A stretch of 64,000 bases of DNA, taken from Macrostomum hystrix (lineage: Eukaryota > Animalia > Platyhelminthes). The translations under genes and the position numbers were made by a program. This document shows, piece after piece, positions 2,896-50,023 of the stretch. How positions within the stretch are numbered: the first letter of the stretch is position 1; every line of letters begins with the position of its first letter. The stretch lies in contig CATNEN010000008.1 in the NCBI GenBank assembly GCA_950097015.1, forward strand, positions 2,790,001 to 2,854,000. The letters run 5' to 3'. The notes under the pieces were generated by a model, which did no database searches, was not told where the DNA came from, and worked only from the letters and a program-made list of their open reading frames with translations.

Positions 2896-5315
2896 CCTCT
2901 ACATGACGACCGATTAGGCTCAAAATACCAAGTTCCACCAGCTCCTTGGATGAGTCCCGAGATGACCTGGCTATGACCCGTTGGCTGCGACTGGCAAAGT
3001 TCAATGTCTACACTGACACTCCACTGTCTACCTGACACTCCACTGTCTACTCTGACACTCCACTGTCTACTCTGACACTCCACTGTTTACTCTGACACTC
3101 CACTGTCTACTCTGACACTCCACTGTCTACCTGACACTCCACTGTCTACTCTGACACTCCACTGTCTACTCTGACACTCCACTGTCTACTCTGACACTCC
3201 ACTGTCTACCTGACACTCCACTGTCTACTCTGACACTCCACTGTCTACTCTGACACTCCACTGTTTACTCTGACACTCCACTGTCTACTCTGACACTCCA
3301 CTGTCTACTCTGACACTCCACTGTTTACTCTGACACTCCACTGTCTACTCTGACACTCCACTGTCTACCTGACACTCCACTGTCTACTCTGACACTCCAC
3401 TGTCTACTCTGACACTCCACTGTCTACTCTGACACTCCACTGTCTACTCTGACACTCCACTGTCTACTCTGACACTCCACTGTCTACTCTGACACTCCAC
3501 TGTCTACTCTGACACTCCACTGTCTACTCTGACACTCCACTGTCTACTCTGACACTCCACTGTCTACCTGACACTCCACTGTCTACTCTGACCTCATCAT
3601 TTGAAGTGGTCCATGAAATTCTTTAAAAACAGACGTGACATCAATCAAAGACAGTCCTTTATAAAAGCAAGTGAGAAAATCATTCTCAGAGCTATCGTCT
3701 ATCACTGCTCAAGGCTCCTAGATAGCGCTGATCAGTTGGGAATATTGTTTAACCCACTGACATCATTTTCAAAGCCTCCCTGTTTGGCGATCCCTTTGAC
3801 TCAGAAGCGACTCAGAGGTTTTGGCGTCGACGACGGAGGTCAAAGGGTCGGCTGAACCCCGCGCCTTCAGTTAGGCACGCGCTCAAACATGACCGTCAGA
3901 TGCTTATCCGCCCCGGCTGTGTTTGCACAGAGCGGGCAATGCTTAAGAAATCCCGAAGCAGTTGTACCACCATACTTTCCCCTCTAGTCTGCATGCAGCT
4001 TCCATGGGAGAATGCCTACCAGCCCTTCATTTTCTCTCGTTCGCTGGTCTCTCTCTCTCCTGTCTGGCTGTCCGTCTCTCTGTCTGTCTGTCTGGCATTG
4101 CCTTTGTTTGTTGGAGTCTGGATGCTGTTGAGTTCAGTTCTTAATCTTTCATATAAAGCCTCACTATGGCCTGCATCACTGTTGTATTGTTTTTCATAAT
4201 ATTCATTTTACTCATATCTCCGTCACTCTCATATCTGTCACTCTCATCTCTGTCACTCTCATCTCTGTCACTCTCATCTCTGTCACTCCCATCTCTGTCA
4301 CTCTCATCTCTGTCACTCTCATCTCTGTCACTCTTATCTCTGTCACTCTTATATCTGTCACTCTCATCTCTGTCACTCTCATCTCTGTCACTCTCATCTC
4401 TGTCACTCTCATCTCTGTCACTCTCATCTCTGTCACTCTCATCTCTGTCACTCTCATCTCTGTCACTCTCATCTCTGTCACTCTCATCTCTGTCACTCTC
4501 ATCTCAAACTTCCCACAATTATCCTAGCGGCACTGAAATCCCTCAACCTGTAATAACAAATTCTCCCATCTCCTCTTGTAGGCTACCTTTAAATAAGCGG
4601 AACAATGTCCCAACAGCCGCACCTGTCACTCCAATCCCTGACTCACTCTTTAATCCACACTTTTTTCTCAACATCCCTGCTCTCCAGTCCCCCTGTGTAA
4701 TGATCCCATCATCCCCCATCATCCACACAGCCTCCTAAAGAGCTTTCCTTTGTTCAATAAAGAGGTGAAGTAATGGTGGCATTGTGTGAGGCTTGAACGG
4801 CTATTAAAGAAATAAGCGATTGAGTTCTCGATACTGTTGAATTAAGAAGGAAAATATTTTTCAGTGTGTGGCCGGGTAGAAGAGAAGCAGATCGCGCTAA
4901 ACTTGATGAGGAATGAAATCTGTACTGGGGATAGATTAAACTTTTGGATTGTTGCATATTGGATTTCTATCCCACTGACCCCAATGACCCGGATAAAAAG
5001 GATTTTACCGCTTCTAAAAAATATTAACAATGTGGGGCAGTAAATCATAGCTGTACCAATCAAATACCAGCTTGCGCATCGGCTAGAGCTGTTTATAATG
5101 CTGAACTCCGCTTCTGAATTCGTACTGCGAGCACAAGGAGAGACGACTTCTGGAAAGTGTGGGACATTGCGACTTGCTCCAAACATATTTCCATAATCTT
5201 ACCAATCAGATCTGCGGATTAACAGCAAGGGATGAGAAAAGTGAGCAGCTTGGGGCGATAAAACGTTTATGATGGTCAGCTCTTCAATAATATCTGCCGC
5301 GACCAATGTCCTTAT
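2896..5315 (-). CDS. Putative exons of an unidentified multi-exon gene (candidate exons 5203-5315, from 5124, 3593-3704, 2896-3012); ends not determined
   Basis: GT/AG-bounded segments that splice in frame without stops. 3593-3704 + 2896-3012 gives IDDSSENDFLTCFYKGLSLIDVTSVFKEFHGPLQMMSVDIELCQSQPTGHSQVISGLIQGAGGTWYFEPNRSSCR(G)|GTGAG. 5203-5315 gives IRTLVAADIIEELTIINVLSPQAAHFSHPLLLIRRSD|GTAAG. No family recognised. Confidence 0.42.
3013..3592. repeat. 19/20-bp minisatellite (CTGACACTCCACTGTCTACT), ~29 copies; coincides exactly with a predicted intron
   Basis: Direct periodicity. On the minus strand it begins GTCAGAG and ends GTGTCAG. Confidence 0.96.
4213..4505. repeat. 15-bp minisatellite (ATCTCTGTCACTCTC), ~19 copies
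   Basis: Direct periodicity; source of the (MRVTE)n and (SLSSL)n ORFs. Confidence 0.96.
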
Positions 5316-6310
5316 CTGAGTCTTCCATTGTCAATCTCCTTATCTCTCATTATCAATATCCTTATCTCTCATTATCAATATCCTTATCTCTCATTATCAA
5401 TATCCTTATCTCTCATTATCAATATCCTTATCTCTCATTATCAATATCCTTATCTCTCATTATCAATATCCTTATCTCTCATTATCAATATCCTTATCTC
5501 TCATTATCAATATCCTTATCTCTCATTATCAATATCCTTATCTCTCATTATCAATATCCTTATCTCTCATTATCAATATCCTTATCTCTCATTATCAATA
5601 TCCTTATCTCTCATTATCAATATCCTTATCTCTCATTATCAATATCCTTATCTCTCATTATCAATATCCTTATCTCTCATTATCAATATCCTTATCTCTC
5701 ATTATCAATATCCTTATCTCTCATTATCAATATCCTTATCTCTCATTATCAATATCTTTAACTCTCATTATCAATATCCTTAAATCTCATTTTCAATATC
5801 CTTTATCTGAGTCTCTCATTATCAATCTCCTTATCTAAGTGACTCATAATCAATCTCCTTAAAGGAGTCTCTCATTATCAATATCCTTATCTCTCATTAT
5901 CAATATCCTTAACTCGCATTATCAATATCCTTATCTGAGTCTCTCATTATCAATCTCCTTATCTGAGTCTCTCATTATCAATCTACTTATCCGAGTCTCT
6001 CATTATCAATATCCTTATCGGAGACTCTCATTATCAATCTCCTTATCTGAGTCTCTCATTATCAATCTACTTATCCGAGTCTCTCATTATCAATCTCCTT
6101 ATCCGAGTCTCTCATTATCAATCTCCTTATCCGAGTCTCTCATTATCAATCTACTTATCGGAGTCTCTCATTATCAATATCCTTATCGGAGACTCTCATT
6201 ATCAATCTCCTTATCTGAGTCTCTCATTATCAATCTCCTTATCTGAGTCTCTCATTATCAATCTCCTTATCCGAGTCTCTCATTATCAATCTCCTTATCC
6301 GAGTCTCTCA
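5316..6310. repeat. Compound 22-bp (TCTCTCATTATCAATATCCTTA) to 28-bp (adds TC[T/C]GAG) minisatellite
   Basis: 22-nt period to about 5780, then 28-nt units. Confidence 0.95.
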
Positions 6311-38812: not shown

Positions 38813-41800
38813 TCAGCAGGTACCGCAGCCGCCGCCGCCGCCCCCTCCTCCTGGATGGCCCACGCTGGCTCTTTTGCTGCGCTTAATCGGCAGCTGACTC
38901 TTGTCCATAGACAGCTCAATGCGCAGCATCACCAGGTCCAACAGCTTGTCAATGGCCGGCTTAACATTCTCACCTGTGCAGGCGCTAGTCTCCAGGTAGG
39001 GCATGCTTGATGAATCAGTTGAGAGATGAATGCGGGTTAAGGATTAAATCCTTAGGGCGATTTAGTTAAGATTCCTAAACGTGATCTAGAGATCCCTAAA
39101 AAAGATCTACAGAACCGAAATTTGATCTAGAGATCCCTAAATAAAAGTGATCTAGAGATCCCTAAATAAAAGTGATCTAGAGATCCCTAAATAAAAGTGA
39201 TCTAGAGATTCCTAAATAAAAGTGATCTAGAGATCCCTAAATAAAAGTGATCTAGAGATCCCTAAAAGTGATCTACAGATCCCTATATAAACGTGATCTA
39301 GAGATCCCTAAAAAAGATCTACAGAACCGAAATTTGATCTAGAGATCCCTAAATAAAAGTGATCTAGAGATTCCTAAAAAAAAGTGATCTAGAGATCCCT
39401 AAAAGTGATCTACAGATCCCTATATAAACGTGATCTAGAGATCCCTATATAAACGTGATCTAGAGATCCCTAAAAAAGAGATCTAAAGATTCCTAAAAGT
39501 AAAGATTTCAAGTGAATTTAGGTTTTCCTACAAATATTGATCCTGAGATACTTTTAACTGATCGATGTGTTTTGTGCAGATCAATAAACTCAAACTTTCG
39601 ATATCCTTAAATTGATATCTAGGGATCGATATATTGTATCCATCTTAAGATCCCTAAAAAGCTCACTTGAGATCGTCAGCCAGTCGCTGGGCCCGCTCGC
39701 AGGTGACGGCCCGCTGGTCGGTCAGATCTTTCTTGTTGCCAACCAGCACAATGTCCGGCCTGTCACAATAGGCATTGGTCTGGAGCAGGCTGAGCCAGTT
39801 TCGAATGTCCAGAAAACTCTGCTCAGAAGTCAGGTCAAACACAAGTAGGAAGCCCATGGCGTCGCGAAAGAAGGCCGTGCTCAGCGAACGGAAGCGCTCC
39901 TGGCCCGCAGTGTCCCTGGGAGCGAATTCGCATGGGATTTCTAGACTAAACACATGGGAGAAGCAATCCCACACACCTGAGAAGCCATCTCACACACCTG
40001 AGAAGCCATCTCACACACCTGAGAAGCCATCTCACACACCTGAGAAGACATCTCACACACCTGAGAAGCCATCTCACACACCTGAGAAGCCATCTCACAC
40101 ACCTGAGAAGCCATCTCACACACCTGAGAAGCCATCTCACACACCTGAGAAGCCATCTGTGACGTTAACTTTTCTTTGTACCACCCCATGGGGTCGGTGC
40201 TATAAATAGATGTGCGTAGTGCTGAGAGGCCGTGCGTTTTTTGGACCTCCGTGGCTCAACCTGGAGCTTGTGAATCGTGTCCCTCATTCTTACTTGATTA
40301 AAAGAATGCTACATGGTGGCAGCGGTGCGGGCTCTAACCACCCGTACAACTTGCGCTCTAAAGACGGAGCGCCTGGTGAAGACTCTGAAGACACTACTGA
40401 AGAAGCCAGCGGAGTGCCGGAGCCGGTTTCACTGGAGGGCGCGAATCTAATGGAAACCATGAAGGTGCTTCTGACGCCCCAGAGTCGGCAACTTCAGGAA
40501 TTGACTCGCGCGCAAGAGAGACAGTCAGCGTTCTACATGGATCAACTGGCGCGTCAGCAGGCGGAGTTCACGAGGCTGCTTGCCGAAGCCAAGCCACGGC
40601 CTCCAGCGGCGGAACCCAAGCTATTTAAGCTGACGGACTCTGATGAAATCGAAGCATTCCTGATGACCTTCGAGAGGACTGCCGCATCGTGTGGATGGCA
40701 AAAGTCGGAGTGGACGATCCGGCTGGCACCGCTCTTGACAGGCGTCGCGCAGAGTGCATTCCACAGTCTGACGACAGCTGCGAGCGCGGACTACGACCTG
40801 GCGAAGGCGACTATCCTAGCGAGGTACAACATCGGCGAGGAGACCTACCGACAGCGATTCCGGTCTCTGCGGAAGTCACCCGAAGAGACCTTCCAGGCGT
40901 TTGCAACGAAGCTGGAAGACCTGTTTGACCGGTGGATGACAGCTGGACTGGACGAGGACCAAAGAGAGGCGCTGTTAGGAGATGACCCCATCGTCAAGCA
41001 GAAAGTGCTCCTGGAGCAGTTTACAGAGTCTGTGACAAGGGGACTGCAAGTGTGGATGCGAGAGAGAAAGCCGAAGAACATCAAATAGGCTGCGAGTCTG
41101 GCCGATGACTATGCAATGGCAAGGAACAACGACAAGACCGGTGGAACACCAGGACACCCGAACCAGGAGACTGCGGAAGGGGCTACTGTACCCAATGCTA
41201 TCGCCCGACAAAGGACAGTTCAACGACCGCAAAGTCTCAAGCCTCCGATCAGCTGCTTCAATTGTGGAGGCCCCCACAAGAAGTTTCAGTGTCCCAACAA
41301 GCCTTCTAATGTCCACCTGGCCTCAGAAGCAAGAGCTATGGAGGGGGCCTCGGACAGGTTCATCACCGGACAGGCAGACGGCATGGAATTGCGATTCCTG
41401 TTGGACACAGGAGCAGATCGAACCACGATCCGACGCAGCTGCCTGCCTGAGCACATCAATTGGACAGGACACCACGCACTATTGCGCTGCTTTGGGGGCG
41501 ACCTACACCGCCTTCCTATCGCTAAAGTGGAACTGCACCTAAACGGCTACACAGGAACTACCGAAGTCTGCGTGTCCGACTCACTCCCAGTAAGCGCTTT
41601 GGCTGGACTGGATGTGATTAGCCGACTCCAGCCAGGGGTTGGAGGCACCCCTAGCACAGGAGCCGGAGGAGAGGCGCGCGAGGGGGCTAAAGGCCTACCC
41701 CTCCCAGCCAATGAGAGAGAGGGGGTGGGTGCGCCACACCACCCAAAACCCCAGTTAAAGGGGGACGAGAGACTTCACGTGGAAGGCATTGTGGCCAGCG

Positions 41801-44800
41801 GCCTAAACCAGATCGATCCGGAACCGGCTAATAAAGCAAAACCGAGAATGACTAGAGCGCAGGTGCGTAAACATCAGCGAGAGTACAACAAGGCTAAACA
41901 GGAAACAGCAGTGCGCCCCGTGGCATTAGATTACCAGGCAGCCCTACTAGACGACAGTGAGCTTTAGGCGGCAGTACAAACCGGCGCATTGATAGCAGAA
42001 AGCAACGGCAGATTGTATCGACGTCAAGCAGTCGGCGAGGACCAACTGGTGCTTCCGAGAGCTCTGCATGCTACGGCGCTGTCTCAGGCCCATGAGAGTG
42101 CGTTCGCTGGGCACCTGGGAAGAAAAAAAACCTATCAACGATTGGAACAGCGATTCTGGTGGCCGACAATGACCAAGGACGTGAAGGACTTCGTAGCAAC
42201 GTGCGACAAGTGCCAGAAGACGGCCCGAATCCCGAGCAACCACCGGGTGAAGCTTGTGCAAGTGCCTGGAGTGGAGGAGGTCTTTACTAAAGTTGTCATC
42301 GACATCAGCGGGCCGTATCCAAGGACGGCGAGCGGTCACCAGTACATCCTGTCGGTTATCGATGCGGCTACTCGGTTTCCAGAAGGATTCCCACTGCGCA
42401 AGATCGACGCGGAGTCTGTGGCCAAGGCATTGATGGACTGCTTCGTGAGGACCGGCTTCCCGAAGGAGATCCAGAGCGACAGAGGCACTAACTTCTCCTC
42501 GGCACTGTTGCAAGCCCTGTACCGGTGCACCGGAGTTGAAGGCATCCAGTCGACACCGTACCACCCGCAAAGCCAGGCGCTGGTGGAGAGGTTCCACGGC
42601 ACGCTCAAGACTATGTTGAGGCGGCTGCCAGCTCGCGAGAAAAAGAGGTGGGACCAGTACCTGCCTTATTTACTGTTTGCCATCCGAGAGGTGCCTAACG
42701 AGACAACTGGTTTCTCCCCTTTCGAACTGTTGTATGGACAGACCGTACGAGGACCGCTAGACTTGCTGCGACAGACCTGGGACGAGCAACTCACCGAAGA
42801 GAAGAAAGACATCATCTCCTTCGTGCTGGCCCAGAGAGATCGGCTGCGTGCCGGTCAGGAAGCAGCACGAGGCAACGAAGACGTAGCCCGAAAGCGCCAA
42901 AAGCTCTGGTACGACCGGAAGTCGCGGGAACGAGAGCTGAAGCCCGGGGATCAGGTGCTGCTGCTGTTGCCATCGACGGCCAAGAAGCTCCACGCTGAAT
43001 GGCGCGGCCCCTATGAAGTACTGGAGAAGTGCGGCGACGTGAACTACCGGATCCGGATTGGCACGGCAACCAACACGTTCCACATCAATCTGCTCAAGAA
43101 ATACAACGAGCGAGAGTCGATTCTGATGCAGCTGTCAGCAGTAACGCCGGTTGCTCCTGCGCTCTCCGACCGTCTGAGCCCGGACGAGAGGGACCGTCTC
43201 CAGCAACTGGTGCAGGGCTTCGCGAACGTCTTCAGTGAGATGCCGGGTAGGACCGACCTGGTGGAGCACCGAATCCGGACGACATCTGACCGTGTTGTGC
43301 GCATCCGGCCGCGACGGGAGCCGCAGGCACATCGACAGGTGCTCCAAGAGGAGATCCAACGCATGCTGGATCTCGGAGTGATCGAACCGTCGGACAGTGA
43401 CTACTGCTCCCCGGTTTGTCTAGTGGCCAAGAAGGACGGCTCGGTCCGATTCACGGTCAACTTCAAGGCGTTGAATGAGCTGGTGGCTTTCGATTCCTAC
43501 CCAATGAAGAACATCGAGGATCTGCTGGAGCGAGTCGCCAAGGCCAAGTTCATATCCAAGCTAGATTGCTGCAAGGGCTACTGGCAGATTCCTCTGTCCG
43601 AGAACTCGAAGCGGCTGACGGCATTCGCGGCCGGTGGCAAGCTCTACCAATTCACCGTAATGCCCATGGGCTTAAACTGCAGCAGCGCAACGTACCAGAG
43701 GCTCATGGACAAGATGTTCCAAGGACTGGGCAACGCAGACTCATACGTCGACGACATCGCCGTGTTCAGCGAGACCTACGAGCAGCACGTCCACGACCTG
43801 AGGGAGGTGTTAGGACGCCTCCAGGCTGCCGGTCTGACGGTGCAGCCACGCAAATGCTACCTGGGCGGCAACTCGGCGGACTACCTCGGCTTCAAGCTCG
43901 GCGGAGGCCAGATCGGCACGAGCGAGGATCGAGTGCGGACTATCACGGCACTGGCTCGACCCCAGACCAAGGCCCAGCTGCGATCAGTGCTCGGAGTGCT
44001 CAATCACTACCGTCGGTTCGTGCCCGGCTACTCCGACAAGGTGGCAGCCCTGACTGACCTCACGAAGAAGTCGGCGCCCGAGGACCTAAGAGCGGCCTGG
44101 GGAGATCAACAGACTCGAGCCTTCGAGACAGTAAAGTCTCTGCTGGCGAGCGAGCCGGTACTACGCGCGCCGGATTACAGTCGGCCATTCATTCTGGAGA
44201 CGGACAGCTCGGAGACCGGTATCGGTGCGGTGTTAACGCAAGAGTTCGAGGACGGCCACCATCCGGTGCTATTCGTATCGCGGCGTCTGACTTCGGCGGA
44301 GCGGAGCTATGCGACGATCGAGAAGGAGTGCCTCGCGGTGCGCTGGGCGGTCGAGAAACTGCGCCACTACCTGCTCGGCCGCCGGTTCGTTATCAAGTCC
44401 GACCACAAGCCACTGCAGTACCTGCAGATGGACCACACCAACCCGCGGCTCCAACGTTGGGCCTTCTATCTGTCTGGCTACGACTACGAGATCCGGTACC
44501 AGCCAGGCAGAAGCAATGCGGTGGCCGACGGTCTCAGCCGCATCTGGACTGATTGATTGACCAAATGATTTACTGACTGACTCAGGATTGAGTGACTGTC
44601 CACGTGATTTATTGTACCAGACGGCTCAGTAACTGATTTTGCATTGCTGCTGGTTTAATCGATTTTGCAGTGCCGTAGGATCGATTGATTTGTAGTGTCG
44701 TAGTTTACGCGATTTTGCGTTGCCGATTTAAATTTAAGTTTTGCTGTTTCCTGCGATTCAATTCTGACCTGAAATTTGATCCGGCTTCGTTCTTGTGGTG

Positions 44801-45430
44801 GAGGATGTGACGTTAACTTTTCTTTGTACCACCCCATGGGGTCGGTGCTATAAATAGATGTGCGTAGTGCTGAGAGGCCGTGCGTTTTTTGGACCTCCGT
44901 GGCTCAACCTGGAGCTTGTGAATCGTGTCCCTCATTCTTACTTGATTAAAAGAATGCTACACCATCTCACACTCCTGAGAAGCCATCTCACACACCTGAG
45001 AAGCCATCTCACACTCCTGAGAAGCCATCCCACACACCTGAGAAGCCATCTCACACACCTGAGAAGCCATCTCACACACCTGAGAAGCCATCTCACACCC
45101 CTGAGAAGCCATCTCACACACCTGAGAAGCCATCTCACACTCCTGAGAAGCCATCTTACACCTAATAAGCAGCTCCCCCGCTCACCAGAGCTGCAGATGC
45201 ACCCGCTGGGTCTCGCCCGCCTGCCCATTGGCAGCCGAAGTTGATCGATGAATTAATCGCTTCTGCCGAAAGTCGATACCAACGGTGCTGACAAACCTGG
45301 AGTGAAATACGCCGTCGGTGTACTGATAAAGGATGGAAGTCTTGCCAACGCCCGAGTTGCCCAAAGTCAAAAGTTTGATCAGGTAGTCATAGTCGTCAGA
45401 ATATTTGCCGACCAAGGAGCTGTTGAAAGC
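38813..45430 (-). CDS. RAB27: Rab27 small GTPase; exons 45186-45430, 39667-39915, 38813-39005; initiator ATG not encoded locally
   Basis: [38 protein letters not shown]|[40 protein letters not shown]. These are diagnostic Rab27 motifs. Introns are GT-AG with consistent phases (2,2). AATAAA at 38757-38762. Confidence 0.95.
39069..39500. repeat. ~24-26-bp minisatellite (TGATCTAGAGATCCCTAAATAAAAG) in Rab27 intron 2
   Basis: Recurrent units. Confidence 0.9.
39958..40157. repeat. 21-bp minisatellite (GAGAAGCCATCTCACACACCT), left half of an array split by the LTR element
   Basis: 21-nt periodicity; resumes at 44962. Confidence 0.95.
40158..40313 (+). repeat. 5' LTR
   Basis: TGTGACG...GCTACA; TATAAATA at 40201; ATTAAA near the 3' end. 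Confidence 0.96.
40306..41088 (+). CDS. gag: Gag (capsid with SCAN-related C-terminal region), interrupted by TAG at 41086-41088
   Basis: [58 protein letters not shown], and the frame continues AASLADDY after the stop. Confidence 0.8.
   Translation: MLHGGSGAGSNHPYNLRSKDGAPGEDSEDTTEEASGVPEPVSLEGANLMETMKVLLTPQSRQLQELTRAQERQSAFYMDQLARQQAEFTRLLAEAKPRPPAAEPKLFKLTDSDEIEAFLMTFERTAASCGWQKSEWTIRLAPLLTGVAQSAFHSLTTAASADYDLAKATILARYNIGEETYRQRFRSLRKSPEETFQAFATKLEDLFDRWMTAGLDEDQREALLGDDPIVKQKVLLEQFTESVTRGLQVWMRERKPKNIK
40314..40327 (+). promoter_or_regulatory. Primer-binding site, probably tRNA-Leu
   Basis: TGGTGGCAGCGGTG directly after the LTR is complementary to the ...CACCGCTGCCACCA 3' end typical of eukaryotic tRNA-Leu (assigned from memory, not searched). 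Confidence 0.75.
41089..41967 (+). CDS. Gag C-terminus, zinc knuckle and aspartic protease, ending at in-frame TAG 41965-41967
   Basis: [13 protein letters not shown] knuckle; [12 protein letters not shown] protease motif. Confidence 0.85.
   Translation, partial: AASLADDYAMARNNDKTGGTPGHPNQETAEGATVPNAIARQRTVQRPQSLKPPISCFNCGGPHKKFQCPNKPSNVHLASEARAMEGASDRFITGQADGMELRFLLDTGADRTTIRRSCLPEHINWTGHHALLRCFGGDLHRLPIAKVELHLNGYTGTTEVCVSDSLPVSALAGLDVISRLQPGVGGTPSTGAGGEAREGAKGLPLPANEREGVGAPHHPKPQLKGDERLHVEGIVASGLNQIDPEPANKAKPRMTRAQVRKHQREYNKAKQETAVRPVALDYQAALLDDSEL
41968..44556 (+). CDS. pol: Pol: integrase, then reverse transcriptase, then RNase H
   Basis: INT: [49 protein letters not shown]: [34 protein letters not shown]: [30 protein letters not shown]. 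Confidence 0.95.
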   Translation, partial: AAVQTGALIAESNGRLYRRQAVGEDQLVLPRALHATALSQAHESAFAGHLGRKKTYQRLEQRFWWPTMTKDVKDFVATCDKCQKTARIPSNHRVKLVQVPGVEEVFTKVVIDISGPYPRTASGHQYILSVIDAATRFPEGFPLRKIDAESVAKALMDCFVRTGFPKEIQSDRGTNFSSALLQALYRCTGVEGIQSTPYHPQSQALVERFHGTLKTMLRRLPAREKKRWDQYLPYLLFAIREVPNETTGFSPFELLYGQTVRGPLDLLRQTWDEQLTEEKKDIISFVLAQRDRLRAGQEAARGNEDVARKRQKLWYDRKSRERELKPGDQVLLLLPSTAKKLHAEWRGPYEVLEKCGDVNYRIRIGTATNTFHINLLKKYNERESILMQLSAVTPVAPALSDRLSPDERDRLQQLVQGFANVFSEMPGRTDLVEHRIRTTSDRVVRIRPRREPQAHRQVLQEEIQRMLDLGVIEPSDSDYCSPVCLVAKKDGSVRFTVNFKALNELVAFDSYPMKNIEDLLERVAKAKFISKLDCCKGYWQIPLSENSKRLTAFAAGGKLYQFTVMPMGLNCSSATYQRLMDKMFQGLGNADSYVDDIAVFSETYEQHVHDLREVLGRLQAAGLTVQPRKCYLGGNSADYLGFKLGGGQIGTSEDRVRTITALARPQTKAQLRSVLGVLNHYRRFVPGYSDKVAALTDLTKKSAPEDLRAAWGDQQTRAFETVKSLLASEPVLRAPDYSRPFILETDSSETGIGAVLTQEFEDGHHPVLFVSRRLTSAERSYATIEKECLAVRWAVEKLRHYLLGRRFVIKSDHKPLQYLQMDHTNPRLQRWAFYLSGYDYEIRYQPGRSNAVADGLSRIWTD
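44806..44961 (+). repeat. 3' LTR, preceded by the polypurine tract GTGGTGGAGGA
   Basis: Reads identical to the 5' LTR. Confidence 0.96.
44962..45165. repeat. 21-bp minisatellite, right half of the split array
   Basis: Same unit as 39958-40157. Confidence 0.95.
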
Positions 45431-45500
45431 CTGCAATTAATGAGAAACTTTTCTACTTTAAGTAGTATATAGTGAGTTGTTTGCTTGTATTATTGTACCC

Positions 45501-46843
45501 AGACAATAGTCTGGTGTGACAGACAAGGGTCCTGTGTGACAGACAATGGTCCTGTGTGACAGGCAAGGGTCCTGTGTGACAGACAAGGGTCCTGTGTGAC
45601 AGACAATGGTCCTGTGTGACAGGCAAGGGTCCTGTGTGACAGACAAGGGTCCTGTGTGACAGACAATGGTCCTGTGTGACAGACAAGGGTCCTGTGTGAC
45701 AGGCAAGGGTAATGTGTGACAGACAAGGGTCCTGTGTGACAGACAAGGGTCCTGTGTGACAGACAATGGTCCTGTGTGACAGACAAGGGTCCTGTGTGAC
45801 AGACAAGGGTCCTGTGTGACAGACAAGGGTCCTGTGTGACAGACAAGGGTCCTGTGTGACAGACAAGGGTCCTGTGTGACAGACAAGGGTCCTGTGTGAC
45901 AGACAAGGGTCCTGTGTGACAGACAAGGGTCCTGTGTGACAGACAAGGGTCCTGTGTGACAGACAAGGGTCCTGTGTGACAGACAAGGGTCCTGTGTGAC
46001 AGACAAGGGTCCTGTGTGACAGACAAGGGTCCTGTGTGACAGACAAGGGTCTTGTGTGCCAGACAATGGTCTTGTGTGTCAGACAATAGTCTGGTGTGTC
46101 AGACAATGGTCTTGTGTGTCAGACAATGGTCTTGTGTGTCAGACAATGGTCTTGTGTGTCAGACAATGGTCTTGTGTGTCAGACAATAGTCTGGTGTGTC
46201 AGACAATGGTCTTGTGTGTCAGACAATGATCTGTGTGTCAGACAATGGTCTTGTGTGTCAGACAATGGTCTTGTGTGTCAGACAATGGTCTTGTGTGTCA
46301 GACAATAGTCTGGTGTGTCAGACAATGGTCTTGTGTGTCAGACAATGGTCTTGTGTGTCAGACAATAGTCTGGTGTGTCAGACAATGGTCTTGTGTGTCA
46401 GACAATGGTCTGTGTGTCAGACAATGGTCTTGTGTGTCAGACAATGGTCTTGTGTGTCAGACAATGGTCTTGTGTGTCAGACAATAGTCTGGTGTGTCAG
46501 ACAATGGTCTTGTGTGCCAGACAATGGTCTTGTGTGTCAGACAATAGTCTGGTGTGTCAGACAATGGTCTTGTGTGCCAGACAATGGTCTTGTGTGTCAG
46601 ACAATAGTTTGGTGTGTCAGACAATGGTCTTGTGTGTCAGACAATGGTCTTGTGTGTCAGACAATAGTCTGGTGTGTCAGACAATGGTCTTGTGTGTCGA
46701 ACAATGGTCTTGTGTGTCAGACAATGGTCTTGTGTGTCAGACAATGGTCTTGTGTGTCAGACAATGGTCTTGTGTGTCAGACAATGGTCTTGTGTGTCAG
46801 ACAATAGTCTGGTGTGTCAGACAATGGTCTTGTGTGCCAGACA
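45501..46843. repeat. 20-bp minisatellite, ~67 copies, in two domains (CCTGTGTGACAGACAAGGGT then CTTGTGTGTCAGACAATGGT)
   Basis: 20-nt periodicity with a variant switch near 46050. Confidence 0.96.
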
Positions 46844-47228
46844 AATGCCTTTTTATATATTTTACTCCTCTTGACTGCAAAATACCGTTATGCCTTAAAA
46901 ACGAAGTAAAAAACACCAAGCCAAAAAAAATCAACAGAAAAAAATTCTTTCCGAAGTTATAGAACATTCTTTAAAATTTTATAACAGTAATTGCCACAAT
47001 AAAGTTAACAGACGCTATCATATACAGATGAGTATATATGCAATTTGAGATTGAACAAAAACATAATTAAAAAACACTGAAAGCTCAACAGAAAAATGCT
47101 CCAATGTTTTCGTAGAGTGAAACATTGCGATTAAGGATTAACTTATTTAGAAAAAATTAATTTTAATTGTAAACATAGAAATGCAGCATACAGCACTTCT
47201 GTTCAAATGTAACAATATAAAAGCAACA

Positions 47229-47409
47229 CATGGGATAGACTAGTAATCCATTCGGTTACTTCACCCATTGCATAGACTAGCAATCCATTATGTTCCTTCA
47301 CCCATTGCATAGACCAGCAATTCATTCTGTTCCTTCACCCATGGGATAGACTAGCAATCCATTCGGTTACTTCACCCATGGGATAGACTAGCAATCCATT
47401 ATGTTCCTT
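47229..47409 (-). repeat. 37-bp repeat of the same family as 35566-35666, ~4.8 copies, 3 nt after the Bora stop
   Basis: Reverse complement of GGATTGCTAGTCTATCCCATGGGTGAAG(G/T)AAC..AAT. Confidence 0.93.
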
Positions 47410-47412
47410 ATG

Positions 47413-50023
47413 TCAGGTGGGAGTCTGCATGGGATCATCGACGATCATCTCGGAGGTCAGTGGGGTTCCATCGGCTGCAGCTCCGGCCGCGGTCGGCGTG
47501 GCTGCCAGATCGCAGGCCGAGCCGGAAGATGCAGTCAGAAAGCTGCTGACGTCGCCGCAGCTGGAGGTGCACAGCTGCTGCTGCTGCTGATGCTGCTGCT
47601 GGAGTTGAAGTGATAGGCTGGCCTGCTGAGAGTCTGATGTTGTGTCCATGCTGCAGTAGCTGGGCGTTGGGAGAACAGATGGAGATGAGGTTGATCAATA
47701 AGATAACAATACGAAGTCATTAATCAGTTAGCAATATTTATAAAAAATCAATAGCAAAATTAAACCAATCACTGCGAAGCCTTTGGTTCTTAAATCAGGT
47801 TTTTAGTCTAAAATAATAAACTTGGTTACCCCGACAACCCGGTTAATAAGCGACCGGATCAGTGGATACAACACCCAGATCCCAGCACACAATGCCCAGA
47901 TCCCAGCACACAATACGCAGATCCCCAGCACACAATGCCTAGATCCCAGCACACAATACGCAGATCCCCAGCATACAATGCCCAGATCCCAGCACACAAT
48001 ACCCAGATCCCAGCACACAATGCCCAGATCCCCAGCACACAATGCCCAGATCACAGCACACAATGCCCAGATCACAGCACACAATACCCAGATCCCAGCA
48101 CACAATGCCCAGATCCCAGCACACAATACGCAGATCCCCAGCATACAATGCCTAGATCCCAGCACACAATGCCCAGATCCCAGTGCCCAGTACTCAGATC
48201 CCTTATTCAGATACGCTTACGATCGCTCCCTGATGACTTCCATTGGCTGAAATTTGGGAAACAGTCTGGGACGCGACTGTTGGCCAAGCTGCGGGCTGCC
48301 GGTGCTCGGCAGCACCTGAAACGCCTTGACAACGCGTTCCGGCGTTACTGGCAACAGAGCGGAAGGCGGAGGAGACGGCCGTACGGGACTGGACTCCGCG
48401 GCGCCCCTGCTGGCGCTCTCTTCGCCGAAGCAGCCGCCGCAGCAGTTATTCACGTCCTCGTCGTCATCAGATATGATGGCGGCGAGATCAAAGAAGGCCG
48501 GAATCGATAGGATGGTCTGGGTGGACACTGTAATGGATATCGTTGAATTAATATTGATGGTTTCTACACTATCTACACTTTCTTTCATGTAAAACAAATG
48601 ATGCTTCTAGAATGAGTGTACACTGTGTGTTGGAGATTTTAGGGATAATAATATAATTGCAGGAGGGCTGCAGGCAATGGCGCATCATTTCGTGACGCTA
48701 TGACCCACAGCCAGCGAGGAGGCACACAGATACTGTACGCAGGCATACGCTCACACTGGTGTGTACATCTGCCCCGACTTTCTCATCTTCAGGCAATGTA
48801 CACTCTCACTGTGCATTGGAGGTTGGCCTTAAGGGCGTAAATTGCAAGCCACCAAGTCTTCACTCCGCGGCTGCGCCCCAAATGAAAGTGGCCTCGCCGC
48901 GGAATCGAGCTCAGAAACCTTCGTGCGAGAGGCAAACGCGTTAACGGCTCTGCCACTCACCCCCGGGGTGTTTCCGGGAACTGTGTGCACATTGTGGGTT
49001 GGAGTGTTTCCGGGAACTGTGTGTACATTGTGGGTTGGAGTGTTTCCGGGAACTGTGTGTACATTGTGGGTTGGAGTGTTTCCGGGAACTGTGTGTACAT
49101 TGTGGGTTGGAGTGTTTCCGGGAACTGTGTGTACATTGTGGGTTGGGATGTTTCTGGGTATTGTGTGTACATTGTGGGCTGGGGTGTTTCCGGGAACTGC
49201 GTTTGCAATTATCACAGGGGATTTTCAGGGAACAGGGCGTACATTGTGCCCCCAGGTCACTAGGACTGTGTGTGCATTGCGGGTGAGCATGTTACTGGGA
49301 ACTGAGAGTACATTGGGGCGGGGATATTACTGGACCGATGTGTCATGTCACTCGCAGGTGGGTTCCAAACAGGCGCTAACCATTCCATTTGGGTGCCGAG
49401 GAAGTCTCCTGGCAGTCTCCGTGCGGCTCCGAGAAGCCGCCGTAGCCACCGAAGCCGGAGGGCGACGGTGCGATAATCTGCGACTTGAAATAGGCCTCTA
49501 TGGCGTCCTGCACGCAGAACTGCGAGTCCCAGTGCGCGGTCAGGCGGGCACTGTAGGCCTCCTGCTTCAGAGCGGTCTCCTCCGAGCTGTCGATGATGTC
49601 AGGACAAACTCGAGCTTTGGCATCTGGCGACAGTGCGACCGCGGCGGCGGCTACAGCTGCAACAGCTGCCGCTGTGACAGCGGCGGAACCCGCTGAAGGC
49701 GGCGTTGTGGCGAAGACGCCCGGACTCATGACCAGGCCGCCGTGACCACCCCAGCAGCCGTTAGGGTCCCAGCGCAGGAAGGGATTATAATAGCGGGCAC
49801 CGCTAGGCGTGCGCAAGCTGACGTCCATTGCGCCACCGGGGCCATGATTCCACAGAAGCTCGTAGCCACAGCTGGACGACTGCGGCTGCTGCTCCTGCTG
49901 CTGCTGCTGCTGCTTGGTTGGCGTGCTAGAGCTGAATAAATGAATGCGAGTAGGAGGGGCATCTGGAAGATCGCTTTCTAAGAAGGATAATAAGACATCC
50001 AGACAGCCAGACAGACAGATAAG

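Follow-up and report, generated by a model that had tools for sequence, protein, structure and literature searches.

Spliced leaders of flatworms can carry the start codon of the mRNAs they are joined to. In Schistosoma mansoni, the AUG of the leader was established as an initiator by Cheng et al. (2006, J Biol Chem; pmid 16230357, as cited in PMC9851317 and PMC12582326). According to the summary of that work in PMC9851317, the leader AUG is in frame in 28% of trans-spliced transcripts, and more than 40 complementary DNAs (cDNAs) require it. Leaders that terminate in ATG are also found in Macrostomum (PMC8629364, PMC10468722). The Macrostomum lignano leader, CGGTCTCTTACTGCGAAGACTCAATTTATTGCATG (PMC8629364), is 35 nucleotides (nt) long and ends in ...TTGCATG. 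The leaders of Macrostomum hystrix and M. cliftonense are highly conserved with it, probably including the final ATG (PMC10468722). Here, we describe a Rab27 gene of M. hystrix that lies on the minus strand of a 64,000-nt stretch of genomic DNA (assembly GCA_950097015.1, contig CATNEN010000008.1, positions 2,790,001 to 2,854,000; below, the window) and lacks a start codon of its own. It is very probable that the leader is trans-spliced at window position 45430 and that its AUG starts a 229-residue Rab27 protein.

The comparison with S. mansoni is close. In both, a leader ending in AUG would be joined in frame to an exon without its own start and would provide the initiator Met. The differences are that the window comes from a free-living macrostomid, in another order of flatworms, that the gene is another one, and that we infer the junction and its translation here. 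We propose that Rab27 is transcribed, either alone or together with an upstream Bora-like gene, as a pre-mRNA without its own initiation codon. The leader would be trans-spliced to TTGCAG/G at 45430 (slashes mark splice junctions), with ...TTATTGCATG joined to GCTTTCAAC. Its terminal AUG would then fall in frame before GCT, which would become codon 2 (ATG/GCT, phase 0), and translation from that AUG would yield a protein starting MAFNSS. Judged by the genomic sequence, the leader AUG would be the only AUG ahead of the essential motifs, and it would be in frame with the conserved open reading frame (ORF).

The M. hystrix Rab27 gene opens at a splice acceptor

The gene and its surroundings are laid out in the window as follows.

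45437..45439, minus strand: TAA stop, in frame with exon 1, shutting the reading frame 5' of the acceptor
45431..45436, minus strand: 3' splice acceptor TTGCAG, the proposed leader-joining site; it fits [T/C]TNCAG, the motif most enriched at trans-splice acceptors of M. lignano (PMC8629364), and is homologous to M. lignano TTTCAG (L005, L006)
45186..45430, minus strand: Rab27 exon 1, 81 codons plus 2 bases, with the P-loop and switch I and no Met
45184..45185, minus strand: GT of the exon 1 donor (TG/GTGAG)
39916..45183, minus strand: Rab27 intron 1 (5.3 kb), holding a long terminal repeat (LTR) retroelement on the opposite strand
39667..39915, minus strand: Rab27 exon 2 (DTAGQERF ... GNKKD)
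38813..39005, minus strand: Rab27 exon 3, including the stop codon (starts ETSAC)

The initial annotation had the Rab27 frame opening at GCT TTC AAC, with an in-frame TAA just upstream and no Met until after the G3 motif. All of this was borne out. At exon 1 the minus strand reads ...ttctcattaattgcag/GCT TTC AAC AGC TCC TTG GTC GGC AAA TAT TCT GAC GAC TAT GAC TAC CTG ATC AAA, and 45430 is the first base of the exon, directly after TTGCAG, with GCT (Ala) as the opening codon. Read in frame across the acceptor, the sequence is stop-SRKVSH-stop-LQ and then AFNSS. The TAA at 45439-45437 shuts the frame 3 codons ahead of the acceptor. Translation of exon 1 from 45430 runs to ...RVHLQL and contains no Met anywhere between 45430 and 45186. 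The earliest Met of the gene is in exon 2, after DTAGQERF, the G3 motif.

Exon 1 closes at 45186 with the consensus donor TG/GTGAG, and exon 2 completes the split Trp codon. The boundaries of all three exons were placed cleanly by alignment with full-length relatives; the exons entered searches and alignments as separate queries or rows. All three are open and their splice sites are consensus, and on this sequence the gene is predicted to be an intact Rab27-type GTPase gene of three exons, encoded on the minus strand.

The best matches of exon 1 were Rab27A/B, which made up all of the top hits, at 64 to 72% identity over the exon. Pfam found Ras and Roc, and motifs G1 to G5 of the GTPase fold, including ETSA, are present. 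Membership of the predicted protein in the Rab27 subfamily was thereby confirmed at the level of its sequence. Its C terminus is a poly-Gly run followed by CGTC (...GGCGTC; window 38816-38860, minus strand). This C-x-x-C ending is kept in M. lignano as CGTC or CGAC (C termini of P0322-P0324), whereas the usual Rab27 ending is CXC and a second Macrostomum paralogue (see below) ends in GCAC.

Two of three M. lignano orthologues are annotated from the homologous acceptor

The M. lignano orthologues form one cluster: PAA92372.1 and PAA80025.1 (230 residues each) and PAA92437.1 (228 residues), from genes Mlig016730.g1, Mlig016845.g1, and Mlig033567.g2. All three are labelled "partial" (5') in GenBank and have no starting Met. 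In two of them the first codon is GCT, immediately after the homologous phase-0 acceptor; in the M. lignano genome gaatttcag directly precedes that start (TTTCAG/GCT; L005 and L006). In the annotation of that genome, the leader was trimmed from the reads and the 5' ends of genes were set by peaks of leader-containing reads (PMC5730564). Under such a pipeline, a leader-initiated ORF is expected to appear as a 5'-partial coding sequence whose first base directly follows an AG.

Similarity between the window and M. lignano begins exactly at GCT, and there is none upstream of it. In both species 11 residues stand between the acceptor and DDYDY (within a DDYDYLIK block), and the GKYSDDYDY block is conserved along with the N-terminal length. 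This fits the earlier expectation that a leader AUG plus GCT would give Rab27 an N terminus of normal length. Amino acid identity to M. lignano is 80% in exon 1, 95% in exon 2, and 81 to 92% in exon 3. For exon 2, the ratio of nonsynonymous to synonymous divergence (dN/dS) comes to 0.033; over the first 62 codons of exon 1 it is about 0.04, dS being at least 0.8. A dN/dS of 0.03 to 0.04 indicates that the predicted gene is functional and under strong purifying selection, and not a decaying copy.

In both species dUTPase, the Bora-like gene, and Rab27 follow one another in the same order. This collinearity, together with the unusual C terminus that they have in common, backs the assignment of the window gene and the M. 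lignano genes as orthologues. The M. lignano genes thus resemble the window gene in their poly-Gly tail ending CG(T/A)C, their missing Met, and their synteny. They differ in residues 2 to 8, which are AASGSWG in M. lignano and AFNSSLV in the window. Within exon 1, the window keeps an AG (AACAG/C, 45420-45430) at the place that matches GCCAG/C in M. lignano copy L005.

One M. lignano copy reads as the leader tail at the acceptor position

The window retains its acceptor, TTGCAG, whereas the reference sequence of one M. lignano copy, L004 (NIVC01000055.1), has GCATG where the acceptor is expected. The 5 bases before GCT are GCATG in L004 (5996-6000) and TTCAG in both L005 (5987-5991) and L006 (5996-6000), so that in L004 the AG is lost and ATG/GCT is made. 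GCATG is also the last 5 letters of the leader. Four adjacent changes that spell the leader tail would be unlikely by chance.

The Mlig_3_7 assembly was polished by Pilon, using RNA sequencing reads mapped by STAR (PMC5730564). The simplest explanation of L004 may be that reads opening in the last letters of the leader were made to align with the genome, so that those letters replaced the acceptor. Alternatively, GCATG may stem from gene conversion by a cDNA. Whether GCATG arose by polishing or by conversion, RNA in which the leader is joined to GCTGCC must therefore, by this reasoning, exist in M. lignano.

The upstream region offers no convincing ATG

Five features lie 5' of the acceptor, in part overlapping.

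45431..46966, minus strand: candidate outron; its 1,536 nt contain no coding-strand ATG
45500..46844: 20-bp minisatellite, 67 copies
46845..47412, minus strand: AT-rich spacer with the 37-bp repeat, 3' of the neighbouring gene's stop
47229-47400: 37-bp repeat
47413..47649, minus strand: final coding ORF of the neighbouring upstream gene, which is on the same strand (Bora-like, with weak support)

Going 5' from the acceptor on the coding strand, 69 nt of unique sequence are followed by the 20-bp array, AT-rich DNA, the 37-bp repeat, and the stop codon of the neighbour (47413-47415). From 46966 to 45431 the minus strand is free of ATG. Most of this stretch consists of the array, and by our estimate the 191 non-array bases would lack an ATG by chance about 5% of the time. 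Therefore, we take the ATG-free 1,536 nt as a helpful observation and not a striking one. Between 47649 and 46803 there are 30 formal "ATG...GT" phase-0 mini-exon candidates. The donor usual in Macrostomum, GT[G/A]AG, is missing from all 30, the majority of which fall within the AT-rich spacer or the 37-bp repeat. The earlier statement that this region holds no convincing ATG-bearing cis exon agrees with these results. Its description of the region stood in part: the 20-bp array and the AT-rich DNA are there, accompanied by the 37-bp repeat, but the Bora label of the neighbour is weakly supported, with an earlier exon of that gene matching Pfam BORA_N at E=0.047, under the cutoff.

The only poly(A)-like signal in the spacer (46845..47412) is ATTAAA at 47167. 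The distance from the stop of the Bora-like gene to the Rab27 acceptor is about 465 nt once both tandem arrays are subtracted. This is below the repeat-adjusted operon threshold of 1,000 bp used for M. lignano (PMC8629364). A shared precursor of the two genes is possible. In both species the gap between the two genes is made of tandem repeats with unrelated units, the 20-mer in the window (45500-46844) and (CTGT)n in the M. lignano outrons (L004-L006, about 5270-5920). No gene for the spliced-leader RNA itself was found within the 64-kb window.

A second Macrostomum Rab27 paralogue is trans-spliced and has its own ATG

Three protein searches were made. A word search with exon 1 gave a best match of 72% identity. 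A profile with a bird Rab27 fragment in the lead and exons 1 and 2 as separate rows returned mostly vertebrate proteins, yet it also brought up P0184 and P0186. A profile led by P0184 then brought up the M. lignano orthologue cluster. From these searches, Macrostomum has two Rab27 paralogues. The second consists of P0184 and P0186, with transcript contigs L001, L002, and L003 (L003:1-60), and its protein starts with MGDSMIQQ. A rotifer Rab27 (P0172) also has the MGDSMI start.

Contig L002 opens with ATTTATTGCATG/CTAATCC..., in which the first part is the tail of the Macrostomum leader (L002:1-135), and this agrees with the initial annotation in its premise that the host leader ends in AUG. L001 retains the unspliced acceptor, tttcag/CTAATCC (L001:200-300). 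The second paralogue is thus trans-spliced to the same leader as that proposed for the window gene, but an ATG of its own lies in the same exon, 74 nt past the leader site, whereas the window gene has none. In the second paralogue the leader AUG is out of frame and opens an upstream ORF of 38 codons that overlaps the true start. The two paralogues would then use the leader AUG in opposite ways, as the sole initiator in one and as the start of an upstream ORF in the other. It is conceivable, though we would call it rather doubtful, that trans-splicing could tune their translation in opposite directions and that this arrangement has been kept since before the species split.

We also considered MGDSMIQQ as a hint of a missed upstream exon of the window gene and rejected it; the peptide belongs to a different paralogue, whose C terminus differs and which has a counterpart of its own in M. 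lignano (P0290). Allowing up to 2 substitutions, we found no peptide like MGDSMIQQ in any frame of the 64-kb window.

RNA from M. hystrix

A run index listed 5 RNA runs containing exon 1 words, and 4 small runs of one study (X1 to X4) contained all of the sampled words. On 45162-45499, run X1 gave a single contig of 156 nt, placed at 45286-45429, inside exon 1, and ending next to the acceptor. At each end it has 6 unaligned letters, which may be an effect of trimming. Runs X2 to X4 placed no contig on this interval, with a filter that can drop contigs by chance. The stop of the X1 contig at the acceptor is compatible with a discontinuity of the RNA there and lends weak support to one; the joined sequence is not revealed by it.

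A retroelement in intron 1

The LTR retroelement in intron 1 is on the strand opposite to Rab27, with gag/pol ORFs at about 40210-44556. Its repeated LTR starts at 40210 and at 44858, and the two ends share one ORF start. Each end adjoins a 21-bp array of one and the same unit (window 39958-40158 and 44962-45161). The 21-bp array seems to be part of each LTR or attached to it.

DISCUSSION

The start codon could also come from a small cis-spliced exon, 1.5 kb or more upstream and lying within the neighbour's 3' untranslated region or past it. Formal candidates for it exist in 47649-46803, and the paralogue P0184/P0186 has 8 extra N-terminal residues (MGDSMIQQ) before the aligned position. However, those candidates lack a GT[G/A]AG donor and lie mostly in repeated or AT-rich DNA, and the extra residues belong to a paralogue that has its own ATG in the leader-site exon. 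Moreover, the true M. lignano orthologues, which were annotated from a transcriptome, start at the acceptor too, and homology stops there. We consider such an exon unlikely. A different idea is that the start was lost, leaving a decaying or untranslated copy, a non-AUG start, or a start at the internal Met after G3. The absence of a genomic ATG and the 5-kb retroelement in intron 1 would fit with this. However, it is at odds with open exons, consensus splice sites, and a dN/dS of 0.03 to 0.04 at a dS of 0.8 or more, and also with the conserved N-terminal length and GKYSDDYDY block. Starting at the internal Met would cost the protein its P-loop, switch I, and G3. This makes loss of the start highly improbable in our judgment.

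It has also to be asked if most joining of the leader takes place at a different AG, such as AACAG/C, 11 nt into exon 1, which would put its AUG out of frame and make the productive form a minor one. The annotation of M. lignano copy L005 (PAA92437.1) starts 9 nt past its TTTCAG acceptor, beside a second AG (GCCAG/C; L005:5992-6003) that is conserved. On the other hand, CAACAG does not match [T/C]TNCAG, and in two of the three M. lignano copies the annotation begins at the in-frame site. Out-of-frame joining would produce an 8-codon ORF and no Rab27, which is hard to reconcile with strong purifying selection. Predominant use of another AG is, we think, very unlikely. Even so, L005 counts against initiation from the leader AUG at 45430, and if GCCAG/C is an alternative acceptor there, the leader AUG would be out of frame in that copy. 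Four other points weigh on the same side. The context of the leader AUG is weak at -3 (T). Runs X1 to X4 gave no read or contig of this species with the leader joined at 45430 (on 45162-45499). The three protein searches turned up no Rab27 protein or transcript from M. hystrix itself in the protein collection, in any length class. Finally, that the GCATG "imprint" in L004 is an assembly artefact is something that we infer.

Initiation of Rab27 from the AUG of a leader joined at 45430 would not alter what is known of the mechanism, which has been known since 2006; Rab27 would be a further ordinary case of it. Its main value is for annotation. Gene finders that demand a genomic ATG truncate such genes, start them at the wrong place, or label them partial, as seen in the GenBank entries for M. 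lignano. In addition, leader tails may have been written into Mlig_3_7 at other strongly expressed trans-splice sites, creating false ATGs and erasing acceptors. For the biology of these worms, the finding would mean that a conserved GTPase of membrane traffic joins the flatworm genes that need trans-splicing for their translation, and this dependence would be common to two distant Macrostomum species.

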